A DNA stretch of 63,491 nt, filler included, from Lenisia limosa (Eukaryota > Protista > Breviatea): NCBI GenBank assembly GCA_001655205.1. It is 16 parts of 16 records of this genome, joined end to end, with 100 filler letters (N's around TTAATTAATTAA, not from the genome) between each part and the next. Parts side by side here need not be neighbours in the genome. Positions count along the whole stretch, not along the records: positions 37,047 to 42,600 come from LPNZ01004390.1; 15 more parts are not named here. One strand, given 5' to 3'. Positions within the stretch are counted from its first letter, which is position 1. Every line of letters begins with the position of its first letter. The translations under genes and the position numbers were made by a program. Positions 36,911 through 42,700 of this stretch are shown piece by piece. The notes under the pieces were generated by a model. The model was not told the DNA's origin and did no database searches. It was given only the letters and a program-made list of their open reading frames with translations.

Positions 36911-37047
36911 GTATGTATATATAGTGAAAAAGGGGGGGGGGGGTATNNNNNNNNNNNNNNNNNNNNNNNNNNNNNNNNNNNNNNNNNNNNTTAATTAATT
37001 AANNNNNNNNNNNNNNNNNNNNNNNNNNNNNNNNNNNNNNNNNNNNG

Positions 37048-38879
37048 TACACCTGGGTGACTTTGACAATGCCGGGGTCCTGGTGTGGAATCGTGGGGGG
37101 GGGGGTCCTTTTAAAAACTGTGCGGGAGTTAAGGACTTACAACATTACATAGGAATACAAATACATCCGCGTTAAGTCCTGACATGGATATTGAGCTTTA
37201 TCTTTAGTTAATCGTGTCAGGACTTATCGTGTCAGTAGATACATGTATATACAATAGTTTTAGAAGCAGAAGTGTGTTCAACAACAGTTTTATTTCAAGG
37301 TGTGCACTCAGAATCTCAAACCATAACAAAGTAACTCATCAACAACCATTACCTCCCTTTTGAGGGAATAAAACAGGTAGTATAGTATATGATATTTAAA
37401 AAACAACATTAAGTAAAAACTGTAAATTTAATCACCTAGTTTCGACAAGTGCTACGACAGCTTTGAAACAAACCGTTACATCCCAAACTGCCGAGGTGAG
37501 GGGGGGGGGNNNNNNNNNNNNNNNNNNNNNNNNNNNNNNNNNNNNNNNNNNNNNNNNNNNNNNNNNNNNNNNNNNNNNNNNNNNNNNNNNNNNNNNNNNN
37601 NNNNNNNNNNNNNNNNNNNNNNNNNNNNNNNNNNNNNNNNNNNNNNNNNCATTGAGAGTATACGGTGACCGGGATAAGTCTTGATCAATTTTCCTCGGGA
37701 AATCATATAGTGTAGTATAGTATATACAGGGATAAGTCTTGACCAATTTGCTATGGTTTCCGAAGAAAAATCGGTCAAGACTTATCCCGGTGAATACATA
37801 GGTATGTATTATTGCCCCCATTTCGCCCTATCATTTCCCTGCTTAACCGAGCGAAGGGTGTCGTAGAAATCGAGGTGGACGCCCATAGTACGAGCCAGCC
37901 CTCTGCAGTCTTTTGGTGCCAAGACCGCATCTATACTGCGGGAACTGACGGGTGGGGAGGGGATATCATGTGATATGATATAGTACATTTTGGGCTTCAC
38001 TTCGGTTCGAAAAAAGACTGAAATTCTCGATAAATTCTTGAAAACTTGTGTTGTTAGCCAACAGAGTTGATTTTGGGGCTATTTTAATTTCATAAATTGT
38101 TCAGTTTTACGTGCTTGTTGATTGTTTTTTGTTTTGTGTTTGTTTAGAGCTTATTCGGTTCATGATTAGTAGCTTTACGCAAATATTCTTCATCGAAATT
38201 TCCTTAGTNNNNNNNNNNNNNNNNNNNNNNNNNNNNNNNNNNNNNNNNNNNNNNNNNNNNNNNNNNNNNNNNNNNNNNNNNNNNNNNNNNNNNNNNNNNG
38301 CGAGCCCCTCCGACAAGCCGCGAGCATTCCCAGCTCAAACGTCAGCTGTTCATTCCATTTCGTGAGAGGGGGGGGGGGGTGTCACAAAGAGGGTCACGAT
38401 ATCATATCACTCAATATTCTCATATTCCTCAATATCCCTATCTGTAATGCTTCCCTACGTCCCATAAAACTGAATTTCTCGATAAATCGTCGCTAAACAT
38501 AGATACTTTACCCATCTACATCAATATTCACACTAAGGCTTCAGTCCGAAAAAGACTGGTAAAATGTCGAATTTTTTTGAGGATCTATCGAGAAATTCAG
38601 TCTTTTTGGGACCGTAGGGAAGACCTATTCTCATCTCCCCCCTTCAACAAAAAAGTCGATTTGCCCCTATCGGCCTATAAGTCGGCTTCTGCGAGATACT
38701 TATTTTTATTTCTCATTGCTATGTATGCATATATATTGATATCTATATATAATTATATACTATTAGATACTATTCTTTACTGTACATAATATATTATACT
38801 ATTATAAACTATACTATTATATATGATATAAGTCGTTCTTCATAATGCTGTTGAACCAGCAATATTCTCTCTCTCTCTC

Positions 38880-38910
<31 letters not shown>

Positions 38911-41900
38911 CTCTCTCTTTCTCTCTCTTTCTCTCTCTTTCTCTCTCTTTCTCTCTCTTCCCACACACACACCATTATTCACCACCAGCAATATTCTCAT
39001 CATCACCCAGAACTTTTGCCGACTCTGACGTCATCGCTCTGGGCTGCGGAAGTGGCAAAACCGTCTTGGTGTCAAAAGACTCCGGCCTAGTTGGTTTTTG
39101 GTTTTTCATTCCCCTGTGTGGACGGCTTTGGTTTCTTGTTTTATTTTTATTCTGGTGTTTTTTGTTTTGTTTTGTTTTTTTGTTAAGTCCTATTTTGAGA
39201 TGAACCACTGTTGAAACTTACCAAATAAGGCAACCGCGGAAATCCATAACTCCGACTCCACGAAGGCCGTTAGTTTCCTCAATCCGAAAAACAGTAGGCA
39301 AAGTCTCAAAGTGCCCCCCACCCCACATGCATGCCAGACAAGTTGTAATGGGTGGAGGGGGGAGAACGTAAAAACGAAGTTAATTATGATGATGAGGAGA
39401 AACGTTTGTTTCCTCATCACAGGGGTGTGTGGGAGAAATCGGAAAATTATGAAACAAAACAACATAAAAAAGAAGCCCAAAATCAACTTTTTTGGGCATC
39501 CCTACGATCCCCAAAAAAGAATGAATTTCTCGATAAAATCTTGATAAATATCGACATGTTACCGGCCTTTTTCGGACCATAGGAAGCTCCTAATTATAGC
39601 TATAACCACACCATGATGACTTGGTGAATTAATGTTTTACTATTATCTAATATCTCTTAAAGCGTGATGGCGTGGACNNNNNNNNNNNNNNNNNNNNNNN
39701 NNNNNNNNNNNNNNNNNNNNNNNNNNNNNNNNNNNNNNNNNNNNNNNNNNNNNNAATTTCATATAACTATAACCACCATAGTCACGACAGCTTCCGGTTC
39801 CGATCTGAAGAACTGGTCAATCCAAGACGTCACCAATACGCAAGAGACAACGTGGGGTGATGCGGTCCTATTTTGATCACAATTGAATAAGAAAATCATA
39901 CTATATTAAATAAATCAAGAATACATTGGGATACCATACCATAAATATCGCGGAGCCTCTTCCCCTGAGCACCATAAAAACAGCGCAAAACAGGCTGGAT
40001 TTGATATATTATATGTAGGGCTTCCTAAGGTCCCATAAAAGACCGAATATCTCGATAAATCCTCGATAAATATCTATATTTAAACGGTTATTTTCGTACC
40101 CAAGTGAAGCTTTAATTATATGAACTTATCCCCCTCCCCCCAATAGGAAAGTCACGCTTTTGACCGCAACACCGGACTCGGTAATTACCGTCAACGTTGA
40201 TGGGGAAATTGCTGTACGTTCCCTGGACATGCTTGAAGACGTCAGTGTAGTTCATGAGGGTGGGGTGGGGGGGTAAAATGGAAAATTTATGAAACAAAAA
40301 AGCCCAAAAGCAACTCTGTTAGCTGACAACGTACAAGGGTTGAGAACAACAAAACAAATGTAACAATTGTCTAAAGAGGATTTTGGGTTTTTGTTGTTCC
40401 TTTTTTTAAGACTCTGCGATTAATAGTAACAATACTGTTTCGATTTGAAGTGATAGATGAATTCTTCAAGAGAAATGTTCTGTAAAAGAAACCTGGGGGG
40501 GGGGGTACTTTTACATCTGATAAGTAACTTTTAATAAATATATACACTGTATATCTATATATTGTACTAGATAATACTTCTGAATCTTATTTTCAATTAA
40601 TTCCTTCAAATATATTGCCCAACATTTTTCTCCCCCTCCCCTCATCATTTTTATTCCATTTTTACTCCTCCCTCATAAATGTTCCATTTTAATTTCTCAA
40701 GGCAAGTCATATCCCATCGCACTGGCATCTTTAGCTCAGAAAGTGCTGGTAGCTTTCGCCAACAAAACTCTGGTGGAAATGACCGTGGTGAATGGACAAG
40801 TGGGGGGAGTGTTGGAAAAGTGCGAAATAAAAAACAAGGTTGAATCTGGCCGAAGCCGTCCAGTCCATACCATCACACTTCTCAGAGATATTTTTGTAAT
40901 ATAATTTTAATTCCCCCCCATCATTTGCCTTGCAACTGCACACAGCTTTCTGTGTGCCCCTAATTCTAATAATCTTACTTTGAATTCTTATATCTTATTT
41001 CATGTAATCCAATTTTTACCCGTCAAAGGCCTCAGAAATCAAGACGACGGCACAGTCGAAGTCCTTCATTGCCATTACCCCAGTAACGTCTGGCTTTGTT
41101 GCAGCTGACCAGAGTGGTGCTATTTACGTTGGAGGGAGGAGGGCAGAATATTTTTTATTAAACTTTCCTTCATTTTACCCCATTATTTTATTTTTTCTTT
41201 CATAAATAATTTCCTTTACCGAGTGATGGGATGCGGTGCTGCAGAAGCGACTGACCTGGGGTTTTTTTGTTTCTTTGTTACCCTCGTTCAAATTTTTCAA
41301 AGTTTCCTTCACCCCTCTCCAGATTAATGAAAATAAGATTGGGCAAGTGTCGGGAATAGTTTCAAAACTAGCAGTCTCCAAGGATGGTGAGTTTGGGGAT
41401 GTGTAGTTTTTTGTTGTTATTGTTGTTGTTGTTGTTGGTAGGGCTTCCCTACGGTCCCAAAATAGACTGAATTTTTCGATAAATCCTCGAAAACTATCGC
41501 TATTTTACCGGGGGTTTTTTGAACAGAAGTAAAGCTCTAATTGTTGGGGAGGGGATGTGTTCTCATCACTTCGTATGATCTATAGGGCTTCCCTACAGTC
41601 GAAAAAGACCGTCAAAATATCGATATTTATCGAGGATTTATCGAGAAATTCAGTCTATTTTGGGACCGTAGGGAAGCCCTAATGACTGTTGAGGCATCTA
41701 GAAAGCTGTGTGTACAGAGGTGTAAGGCAAATAATTGGGTACATTAATATTATTTTAATTCAATATCTCACATAGCGTGATAGTGTGGAACTAGATACAA
41801 CCTTTGTTTTTATTTCTCATTGCTTTCTATGATATATTACACTATTAAATCGAAACCCCATTTCTTTTCCAAAGCTTTATTAGTACTAATATATAAAGAG

Positions 41901-42511
41901 ACAAACTGCATTTCTTCCTCTCCTCTCATCCTTTCAGAAAGCTTGATTGTGGCGTGTGCACCGACAGGGGTAACCCTCTTCACCAAAGGCGAAAATTGGA
42001 CCGCTTCTGTGGTGAGGGGGTATTGGACTGGGTTTTGTTAAATCGAAAATTAATATATCTTGTATGGCTTTATATTCGTTACGTAGTTCTCATCTCTACG
42101 TATCCCCATATTCCCTGATAATATCATAATGATTCTTTTGATCAAAATAATTCGTAATAATTATTTCAGCTAAAAGAAATTCCTAATATTTTTTCAGATT
42201 TGTGGACGTGGAGAGTGTGAGCGAAAGAACCCTCCTCTTAACAAACAACTTACTAAGTACCCAAGCACAGCGGCTGCATTTGCTGCTAATAACCAGGTGG
42301 GTTGAAAGAGATAGTCATAAGCCAGCATAATGATATTTTATGAAAAACAAATCGGAAATATCATTACAAACAAAAGATTTGTAACAATGGTAACATTCAC
42401 TTCGATTCACGGTGTTGGCTTGTTTTTTTACAAAAAGAGAAAGCTCACCCCTCTTCAGTACTTGTATCTGGCAGGTGATAAGGAAGCTGCAGTTGTGACC
42501 CTTGAAAATGG
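37048..42511 (+). CDS. WD40 beta-propeller protein fragment, divergent WDR1/AIP1-like
   Basis: About 12 exons: AVFWCQDRIYTAGTDG, DVIALGCGSGKTVLV, VTTASGSDLKNWSI, VITVNVDGEIAVRS, FVAADQSGAIY, VSKLAVSKDESLIVAC; blade order recalls WDR1. Confidence 0.6.
37664..37796. mobile_element. Family C MITE-like element plus an adjacent partial copy
   Basis: CAGGGATAAGTCTTGACC...GGTCAAGACTTATCCCGG (37727-37790), preceded by a partial left end at 37664. Confidence 0.75.
38534..38627. mobile_element. Family A MITE (B-type ends, reversed core)
   Basis: Shared core and right end TTTTGGGACCGTAGGGAAGACCTA. Confidence 0.8.
38866..38959. repeat. Intronic (TC/TCTT)n pyrimidine microsatellite
   Basis: Direct inspection. 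Confidence 0.95.
39492..39592. mobile_element. Family A MITE (B-type ends)
   Basis: GGGCATCCCTACGATCC...core...TTCGGACCATAGGAAGCTCCTA. Confidence 0.75.
40016..40114. mobile_element. Family A hAT-type MITE with perfect 8-bp TSD
   Basis: TAGGGCTTCC...GTGAAGCTTTA flanked by ATTATATG on both sides (40008-40015, 40115-40122). Confidence 0.9.
40260..40328 (-). repeat. Family E element, inverted, forming the 5' end of an intron
   Basis: Donor GT at 40260 followed by GGGGTGGGGGGTAAAATGGAAAATTTATGAAACAAAAAAGCCCAAAAGCAACTCTGTTAGCTGAC, the reverse complement of the E 3' block. Confidence 0.8.
40821..40960 (-). repeat. Family D repeat, reverse orientation
   Basis: AAGGTTGAATCTGGCCGAAGCCGTCCA...ATCATTTGCCTTGCAACTGCACACAGCTTTCTGTGTGCC. 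Confidence 0.9.
41439..41539. mobile_element. Family A hAT-type MITE, hybrid ends
   Basis: B-type left TIR, A-type right TIR; flanks GTTGTTGG / ATTGTTGG (7/8). Confidence 0.88.
41583..41681. mobile_element. Family A hAT-type MITE (B/B ends)
   Basis: TAGGGCTTCCCTAC...GTAGGGAAGCCCTA; degenerate flanks ATGATCTA / ATGACTGT. Confidence 0.88.
41686..41825 (+). repeat. Family D repeat
   Basis: GAGGCATCTAGAAAGCTGTGTGTACAGAGGTGTAAGGCAAAT...AGATACAACC...TTTCTCATTGCT. Confidence 0.85.
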
Positions 42512-42700
42512 GTATGTTGGGGAGAGAGATCGAAATGTATTTCTTACAAAACCAACTGAGTTGGGGTTTTTTTTTTTTGTTTTTTTTTCCATAAATGTGC
42601 NNNNNNNNNNNNNNNNNNNNNNNNNNNNNNNNNNNNNNNNNNNNTTAATTAATTAANNNNNNNNNNNNNNNNNNNNNNNNNNNNNNNNNNNNNNNNNNNN

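Follow-up and report, generated by a model that had tools for sequence, protein, structure and literature searches.

A short, abundant repeat at the 5' end of a spliced intron in the breviate Lenisia limosa

Results

A spliced intron in an intron-dense gene

We analyzed an intron in a gene of the breviate Lenisia limosa (assembly GCA_001655205.1) that begins with an antisense copy of a short and very abundant repeat, here called E. The window is a stretch of 63,491 nucleotides, filler included, in which 16 parts of 16 records of this genome are joined end to end, and all positions count along it. The piece studied here, 37047-42600 (~5.5 kb), comes from record LPNZ01004390.1 and is eukaryotic DNA of ~38% G+C with three assembly gaps. 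The sequencing data consisted of one DNA-like run and one polyA RNA run, both from the same organism. On the plus strand of this piece, seven exons joined at GT..AG sites form an unbroken frame of 200 amino acids (Table 1). These exons are 54-113 nt long, and an intron interrupts the coding sequence roughly every 86 nt (40147-42512), a very high intron density that fits large-scale intron gain. The intron at 40260-40701 follows the first of these exons; its GT lies at 40260-40261, and it starts with GTGGGGT, seven G and TAAAATGGAAAATTTATGAAAC, one G more than the first-pass annotation gives, a difference of no consequence.

We found that 40260-40701 is a genuine spliceosomal intron. A polyA-RNA contig of 156 nt matches 40701-40799 without a mismatch, and its remaining 27 and 30 letters map elsewhere. 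The base at 40701 is a G, the same as the last exon base at 40259, so that this match fits a junction 40259/40702. The RNA depths fit the same contig: the value of 0.17 in bin 40610-40704 corresponds to four letters at depth 4, a value of 4.0 fills bin 40705-40799, and 1.26 in bin 40990-41084, near 41029, corresponds to the contig's 30 letters, while the depth table is compatible with its 27 letters at the end of the upstream exon. Because the contig bounds and the depths match, the acceptor 40701/40702 and the next donor at 40800 are RNA-supported. The donor 40259/40260 rests on frame consistency, as the nearby GTs at 40265-40266 and 40273-40274 would break the frame. Of the junctions drawn in a first-pass annotation, which was made from the sequence alone, RNA thus supported the acceptor; the donor at 40260 comes from the frame only and was not seen in RNA.

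The donor lies in an antisense copy of E

The intron starts, as the first-pass annotation had stated, with the reverse complement of E: 40260-40330, read on the minus strand, matches the forward copy at 38050-38110. The alignments with E end at the exon boundary, 40260, and the DNA depth changes at the same place, from 3.5 in the exon bin 40135-40229 to 66,960 in the next bin. Unique sequence has a depth of 20-38, which places the E bin (40230-40324) at ~3,000 times single-copy; these values are summed contig depths, with 9,653 DNA contigs placed on 2.8 kb. E has thousands of copies in the genome and is one of several very abundant short modules. Its most abundant part is a core unit of 35 nt (40267-40301). 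Joints connect position 40301 with several other modules and, 35 nt back, with 40267, which shows that the core unit is tandem elsewhere in the genome. The donor 13-mer GTGGGGTGGGGGG, GT included, has an exact copy on the minus strand at 39314-39326.

In addition to the copies in Table 1, clear copies of E lie at 41151-41181 (+), 41191-41220 (+), and 40673-40691 (+, 18/19 identical), and marginal ones at 40371-40398, 41259-41273, 42554-42596, and 40802-40834. A sequencing-run search with E alone gave matches only in the same organism, and two metagenome scans, one with E and one with the module at 41221-41264, gave 0 matches.

Table 1. Positions of the exons, introns, and E-related features in the analyzed piece.
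Feature	Position	Strand	Description and basis
Exons	40147-40259, 40702-40799, 41029-41127, 41323-41386, 41938-42011, 42198-42296, 42459-42511/2	+	Frame analysis
Upstream exon	40147-40259	+	Single-copy; ends ...CATGAGG; frame analysis; DNA-contig depth 3.5 (40135-40229), not raised
Intron	40260-40701	+	442 nt, GT..AG, phase 1, split codon G/GC; frame and RNA contig
Downstream exon	40702-40799	+	RNA contig matches 40701-40799 with 0 differences
Donor GT fused to G-run (GTGGGGTGGGGGGG)	40260-40273	+	6 matches at ≤2 mismatches vs 0.07 expected
Antisense E copy	40260-40330	-	First 71 nt of the intron; blastn, alignments; depth 66,960 in bin 40230-40324
E core unit, 35 nt	40267-40301	-	Most abundant part; G7 TAAAATGGAAAATTTATGAAACAAAAAA
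Degenerate sense copy of inner E	40371-40398	+	blastn, 81% over 31 nt, marginal
Internal G11 module, CCTG11TACTTTTAC	40488-40513	+	Shares 88% identity with 37088-37113, a site at which a likely donor precedes the G-run
E terminus, two degenerate sense copies in tandem	40645-40691	+	Period 28; repeat search, shuffles, blastn
Acceptor AG	40700-40701	+	9 nt past the last E-like base, outside the repeat; sequence, RNA, frame
Next intron	40800-41028	+	Donor GTGGGGGGAG; RNA contig ends at 40799; repeat F (40822-40880) after the G-run
Sense E-family copy	41221-41322	+	Last ~100 nt of intron 41128-41322, up to its AG (..TTCACCCCTCTCCAG); alignment
Forward reference E copy	38050-38110	+	84% over 61 nt, E-value 4e-11; ends TTTTAC without C-run
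Antisense E copy	39422-39469	-	77% over 48 nt; G-rich stretch before it

Sense copies of the E terminus form an inverted repeat with the donor region

Forward motifs of the E terminus stand before the AG, where the first-pass annotation had placed them: TTCCATTTTTACTCCTCCC at 40655-40673 and TTCCATTTTAATTTCTC at 40682-40698. When we compared the two ends of the intron, 40274-40292 was identical at 18 of 19 positions to the reverse complement of 40673-40691, a score reached in 2 of 2000 shuffles. A weaker second sense copy lies upstream of it at 40645-40671. The inverted repeats that the annotation had seen at the intron ends are short but real. In the predicted RNA fold of the intron (-103 kcal/mol, z -2.3), the first 24 nt pair with 40654-40676, both in the minimum free energy (MFE) structure and in the centroid, and between the first 35 nt and the last 80 nt the duplex energy is -32.3 kcal/mol (z -2.5), compared to -12.7 for interior windows. 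The same fold pairs 40289-40309 with 40379-40397, again in the MFE structure and the centroid. Given this pairing, the region 40260-~40410 resembles a foldback unit whose arms are E sequence, similar to a miniature inverted-repeat transposable element (MITE).

G-runs at the donors of the gene

We compared intron ends for eight donors and seven acceptors, from eight introns of this one gene. All eight donors contain GGG within their first 16 nt, compared to 13% of interior windows (p 9e-8), and GGGG is found in six. Donor positions +3 to +20 are 51% G, and none of the donors has a C-run. At the acceptors, CCC occurs at -20 to -3 in 4 out of 7 (p 0.012). The G-run/C-run architecture of the introns in this gene is therefore real. 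The exon ends before GT lack the usual AG consensus (AC, GG, AA, AC, TG, TG, AG, and GG). Of nine G-runs of at least 5 nt in the piece, seven follow a GT, three of them belonging to donors in the gene model and four to likely donors further upstream. These four (37093, 37496, 37952, and 38364) consist of GT or GTGAG followed by 4-12 G, and each stands at the end of an interval free of stop codons, with a different repeat module behind it; the modules adjoining 37093, 37952, and 38364 are other than E.

Runs of G can also arise as poly-G read tails of two-colour sequencing chemistry, and the runs seen here would then be an artefact of sequencing or assembly. One G10 run (37500-37509) does adjoin an assembly N gap, and the sole DNA run is probably from the assembly's own sample. 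However, the runs are short (5-12 nt) and lie inside contigs, the donors have no C-run, 7 out of 9 follow a GT, and the RNA contig stops exactly before GTGGGGGG at 40800. We consider an artefact barely credible.

Sequence of the E family also reaches the end of another intron. The sense copy at 41221-41322 extends to the AG of its intron, and the depth of the stretch peaks in bin 41180-41274 (174,423). Among the 8 E-family matches in modelled introns, about 3-4 lie with the run-side terminus no more than 15 nt from the splice site that corresponds to it, and in the corresponding orientation, where ~0.4 would be expected (binomial 0.006-0.0004), for a list of matches that was hand-picked and is partly marginal. 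We also considered the donor at 40800 as a diverged antisense copy of E and dropped it, because it scores only marginally (z 0.9-3.8) and the repeat next to it belongs to family F, which starts ~20 nt past this G-run donor. The earlier claim that E gives a donor in antisense and an acceptor in sense can be kept in part: E is antisense at 40260, and it is sense in the copy at 41221-41322, which reaches an AG, and in the fragments at 40645-40691, but the acceptor AG of 40260-40701 itself lies outside the repeat.

For the scoring of intron ends against E, the homopolymer run was removed from the E reference. Under this scoring, the 3' end of 40260-40701 has a modest score (z 3.7-5.6), and every other intron end apart from its donor has z ≤4. 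Specific pairing between the two ends of an intron beats shuffles in only 2 out of 7 introns, and pairing of an intron's own ends is on average no better than pairing with the 3' ends of other introns (-20.9 vs -18.6 kcal/mol). The data thus do not support G-run/C-run pairing as having a role throughout the introns. The introns 40260-40701 and 42297-42458 appear similar by eye; this similarity is not significant.

These weak scores raise the question of compositional coincidence, in which intron starts that are G-rich and then A/T-rich, and intron ends that are T/C-rich, would give inverted ends by chance, with nothing special about E. In line with this, the 3' match is only 19 nt long, most other intron ends score weakly for E in a way that depends on the G/C run, and own-end pairing has no advantage over pairing across introns. 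For the 5' end, however, coincidence is largely refuted by a match of 61-71 nt at 84-100% identity (E-value 4e-11, z 23-30), and it also has to contend with the 18/19 repeat reached in 2 of 2000 shuffles and with a depth thousands of times that of single-copy sequence. We therefore regard coincidence as very improbable.

Origin of the splice signals

We judge it somewhat probable that the splice signals of 40260-40701 are transposon-derived and introner-like, with the E terminus giving a donor in antisense and a branch-like TTTAC with a pyrimidine tract in sense. Short and very abundant repeat modules of a MITE-like kind would make up most of the intron. Its 5' ~150 nt would be an E-family foldback unit, the outer terminus of which (the G-run plus TAAAATGGAAAAT...) lies in antisense exactly at the exon boundary, so that both the donor GT and the G-rich stretch following it would belong to the repeat. 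At the 3' end, a pair of degenerate copies of the terminus in sense orientation (TTCCATTTTAC plus pyrimidines) may supply a branch-site-like TTTAC and a pyrimidine tract. The AG has to come from outside the repeat, because a palindromic element that starts with GT must end with AC. Pairing of the inverted termini would bring both splice sites together, and the element would leave the mRNA as an intron or as part of one, like introners and other transposon-derived introns. We infer that E is mobile and that its terminus is what the spliceosome recognises. That the insertion of E created the intron, as opposed to remodelling an older one, is a more tentative proposal, to which we give slightly less than an even chance.

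Several observations weigh against such an origin. Regarding the data, the RNA did not show the donor junction 40259/40260 directly, the genome-wide statements are all based on summed contig depths, which give no clean copy count, and the DNA run is probably the assembly's own source sample, so that its evidence is not independent. Regarding the other introns, a clear E remains at only 1 out of 8 donors, 40260 (z 23-30), once the homopolymer is removed. Comparison of the gene's introns with each other gave significant pairs only through the repeat families P and F and no pair similar over the whole length, so that the end-to-end similarity by which published searches recognise introners was not found within the piece. 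Regarding the intron itself, the 3' part of E is only 19-28 nt long, and the inverted ends are offset, at 14 nt (5') and 10 nt (3') from the splice sites. We found no target-site duplication in register, as comparing each position with the one 442 nt further on gives only GG (40259-60 vs 40701-02). Models with a duplication of AGG or AG were rejected since splicing would add a base to the mRNA and the frame would not be restored, and nothing matches in the same comparison for the next intron (40800-41028). Finally, at least four modules make up the intron, and such a mosaic is also compatible with successive secondary insertions into an old intron. With only a fragment of E at the 3' end, no duplication in register, a mosaic structure, and an AG from outside, the supposition of the first-pass annotation that a two-ended terminal inverted repeat (TIR) transposon is itself the intron is not established.

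The same annotation had suggested that E could explain the G-run/C-run architecture of the introns, and this suggestion did not hold. G-runs stand at all donors but E at only one, so that E fits the architecture and cannot explain it, and the G-runs at 40800, 37093, 37952, and 38364 adjoin other repeats. GT followed by a G-run is a general donor feature in this gene, with which the E terminus agrees without accounting for it. In a second explanation, an old intron with a generic GT plus G-run at one end and a C-run plus AG at the other came first, and several MITE families, namely E, P, F, and the G11 module, accumulated in it later. E would then have reached position +1 through a preference for inserting at or near G/C homopolymers, or through a shift of the splice site onto the repeat's GT. 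Such colonisation would accommodate the G-runs at 8 out of 8 donors with E at only one, the different repeats that adjoin them, the lack of a target-site duplication, the lack of end-to-end likeness between introns, and the mosaic of modules. The forward copy of E at 38050-38110 has no C-run, and the run may hence not be an obligatory part of E. Four observations are difficult to reconcile with this order of events: the tandem 35-nt unit in other genomic copies contains the G7 run, the donor 13-mer recurs exactly elsewhere together with its GT, an insertion exactly at +1 that spares splicing is improbable unless it is targeted, and a sense E-family copy reaches the acceptor of another intron too. 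We take the colonisation of an old intron to be possible, with a likelihood of roughly a third in our view expressed loosely, and thus somewhat doubtful.

A broader proposal is that most introns of this organism were made by foldback MITE families sharing homopolymer termini, which would be a G-run when read on one strand and a C-run when read on the opposite one. If so, inverted-repeat termini would read GT and a G-run at the 5' end and a C-run (plus AG) at the 3' end in either orientation, and every exonic insertion would be spliceable. Such an orientation-independent introner system would then lie behind the intron density (~1 per 86 nt) and the GTGGGG-type donors. We consider this unlikely.

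Discussion

Transposon-generated introns are the best-supported route to rapid intron gain, and a single repeat terminus that serves as a donor in antisense and, in sense, as a tract close to the acceptor would be of interest in this context. Introners are known from 548 families in 175 genomes (PMC9860276), with further cases in PMC12130899 and a review in PMC11282704. They were found in ~5% of surveyed genomes, very few of which are animals (PMC9860276), and their hosts include Micromonas pusilla (IE families), Aureococcus, Symbiodinium, Chrysochromulina, and Acanthoeca (Gozashti et al. 2022, PMC9860276; 2025, PMC12130899; PMC11282704). Like introners, E is short, non-autonomous, and very high-copy; it is placed precisely where exon and intron meet, brings a splice site with it, has TIRs, and is located in a gene of very high intron density. 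Unlike the published families, in which introns are similar end to end, only one end of the intron studied here is a full copy of E, several repeat families form a mosaic in this intron, and a target-site duplication was not found. TIRs without a target-site duplication have been reported for introners of Acanthoeca sp. (PMC9860276). We did not find G-run/C-run termini described in the introner literature cited here (PMC9860276, PMC12130899, PMC11282704).

The pairing of inverted termini recalls the non-canonical, MITE-derived introns of the larvacean Fritillaria borealis and the nonconventional introns of euglenids, in which TIR pairing joins the intron ends and a MITE origin has been proposed (PMC11282704). 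Those introns are mostly non-GT/AG and have no pyrimidine tract (PMC11282704), whereas the intron described here has canonical GT..AG ends and a pyrimidine-rich 3' end. The locus also resembles ordinary MITE insertions in existing introns, as in rice (PMC3278479), with short palindromic families in thousands of copies packed into introns. However, a secondary insertion of that kind is not expected to supply the donor dinucleotide or to stop exactly at the exon boundary.

Introners are already well described, and the intron at 40260-40701 is at most a further case of them. A less well-known feature is that almost all donors carry a fused homopolymer G-run and that unrelated repeats of several kinds adjoin it; this, rather than E, merits genome-wide follow-up. 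G-triplets just downstream of the 5' splice site act as intronic splicing enhancers in short vertebrate introns, and in teleost introns the two ends can be complementary through (GT)n/(AC)n pairing. The donors described here differ from the former in that homopolymers of up to 12 G are fused to the GT, and the introns differ from the latter in that specific end pairing is seen in only 2 out of 7. If the pattern holds genome-wide, it would point to a further, possibly orientation-independent, introner system and offer a case for how the spliceosome reads GT plus G-run donors. If it fails, the locus is simply a MITE-crowded intron.

The host gene and other repeat modules

None of the organism's proteins was found in the collections searched, and the genome thus appears to be unannotated. 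An exon-by-exon search of Pfam (six exons) and PDB (three exons) gave no match. For exon 2, phmmer against 1.84 billion representatives returned only one bacterial PAS histidine kinase, which we judged spurious, and its language-model look-alikes are beta-propeller families (0.87-0.89), a lead only. Neither the phmmer search nor the metagenome scans brought up any relatives. The label 'WD' for the host gene is plausible. Behind the RNA-supported donor at 40800, repeat-derived sequence (40800-40838) is open in the gene's frame up to a GT at 40839. Use of this in-frame GT as an alternative donor, for which it is ready-made, would lengthen the exon by 13 codons; the RNA contig supports the donor at 40800 rather than this one.

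In addition to E, we observed several other repeat modules. The palindromic MITE-like element P lies at 41439-41681 and also at 37989-38046, 38439-38627, 39495-39598, and 40010-40120. Its termini are TAGGGCTTCCCTACGG...CCGTAGGGAAGCCCTA, its arms of 80 nt are 89% complementary, and the element unit is ~100 nt. P has a summed DNA depth of 130,000-170,000 (41465-41654), and other genomic copies often show a direct junction between P and E. Family F (GAAATAAAAACAAGGTTGAATCTGG...CCATACCATCAC) was recognised from a match between 40822-40880 and the reverse complement of 41760-41830 (opposite strands, z 12), with further copies at 38700-38727 and 39640-39680. The module at 41221-41264 is the most abundant of the stretch (summed depth 174,423) and is found at the extreme ends of several polyA-RNA contigs, for example at positions 7-43 of a contig of 1,577 nt. 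The likeliest reason is that contigs break at the repeat, and a transcribed or leader-like role may be considered as well.

A hairpin repeat at 37668-37791 has arms of 40 nt that are 85% complementary (ACCGGGATAAGTCTTGA...). It gives a sub-threshold Rfam match to MIR2670 (40.9 bits, gathering threshold 117) and is most likely just a MITE hairpin; the Rfam search gave only sub-threshold miRNA-like matches, all on hairpin repeats. Further along the piece lies a CT-rich microsatellite at 38866-38959 with a period of 10 nt ((TCTTTCTCTC) x 9.4, 94% matches), and beside it an AT-rich repeat of the TATAC type at 38744-38821.

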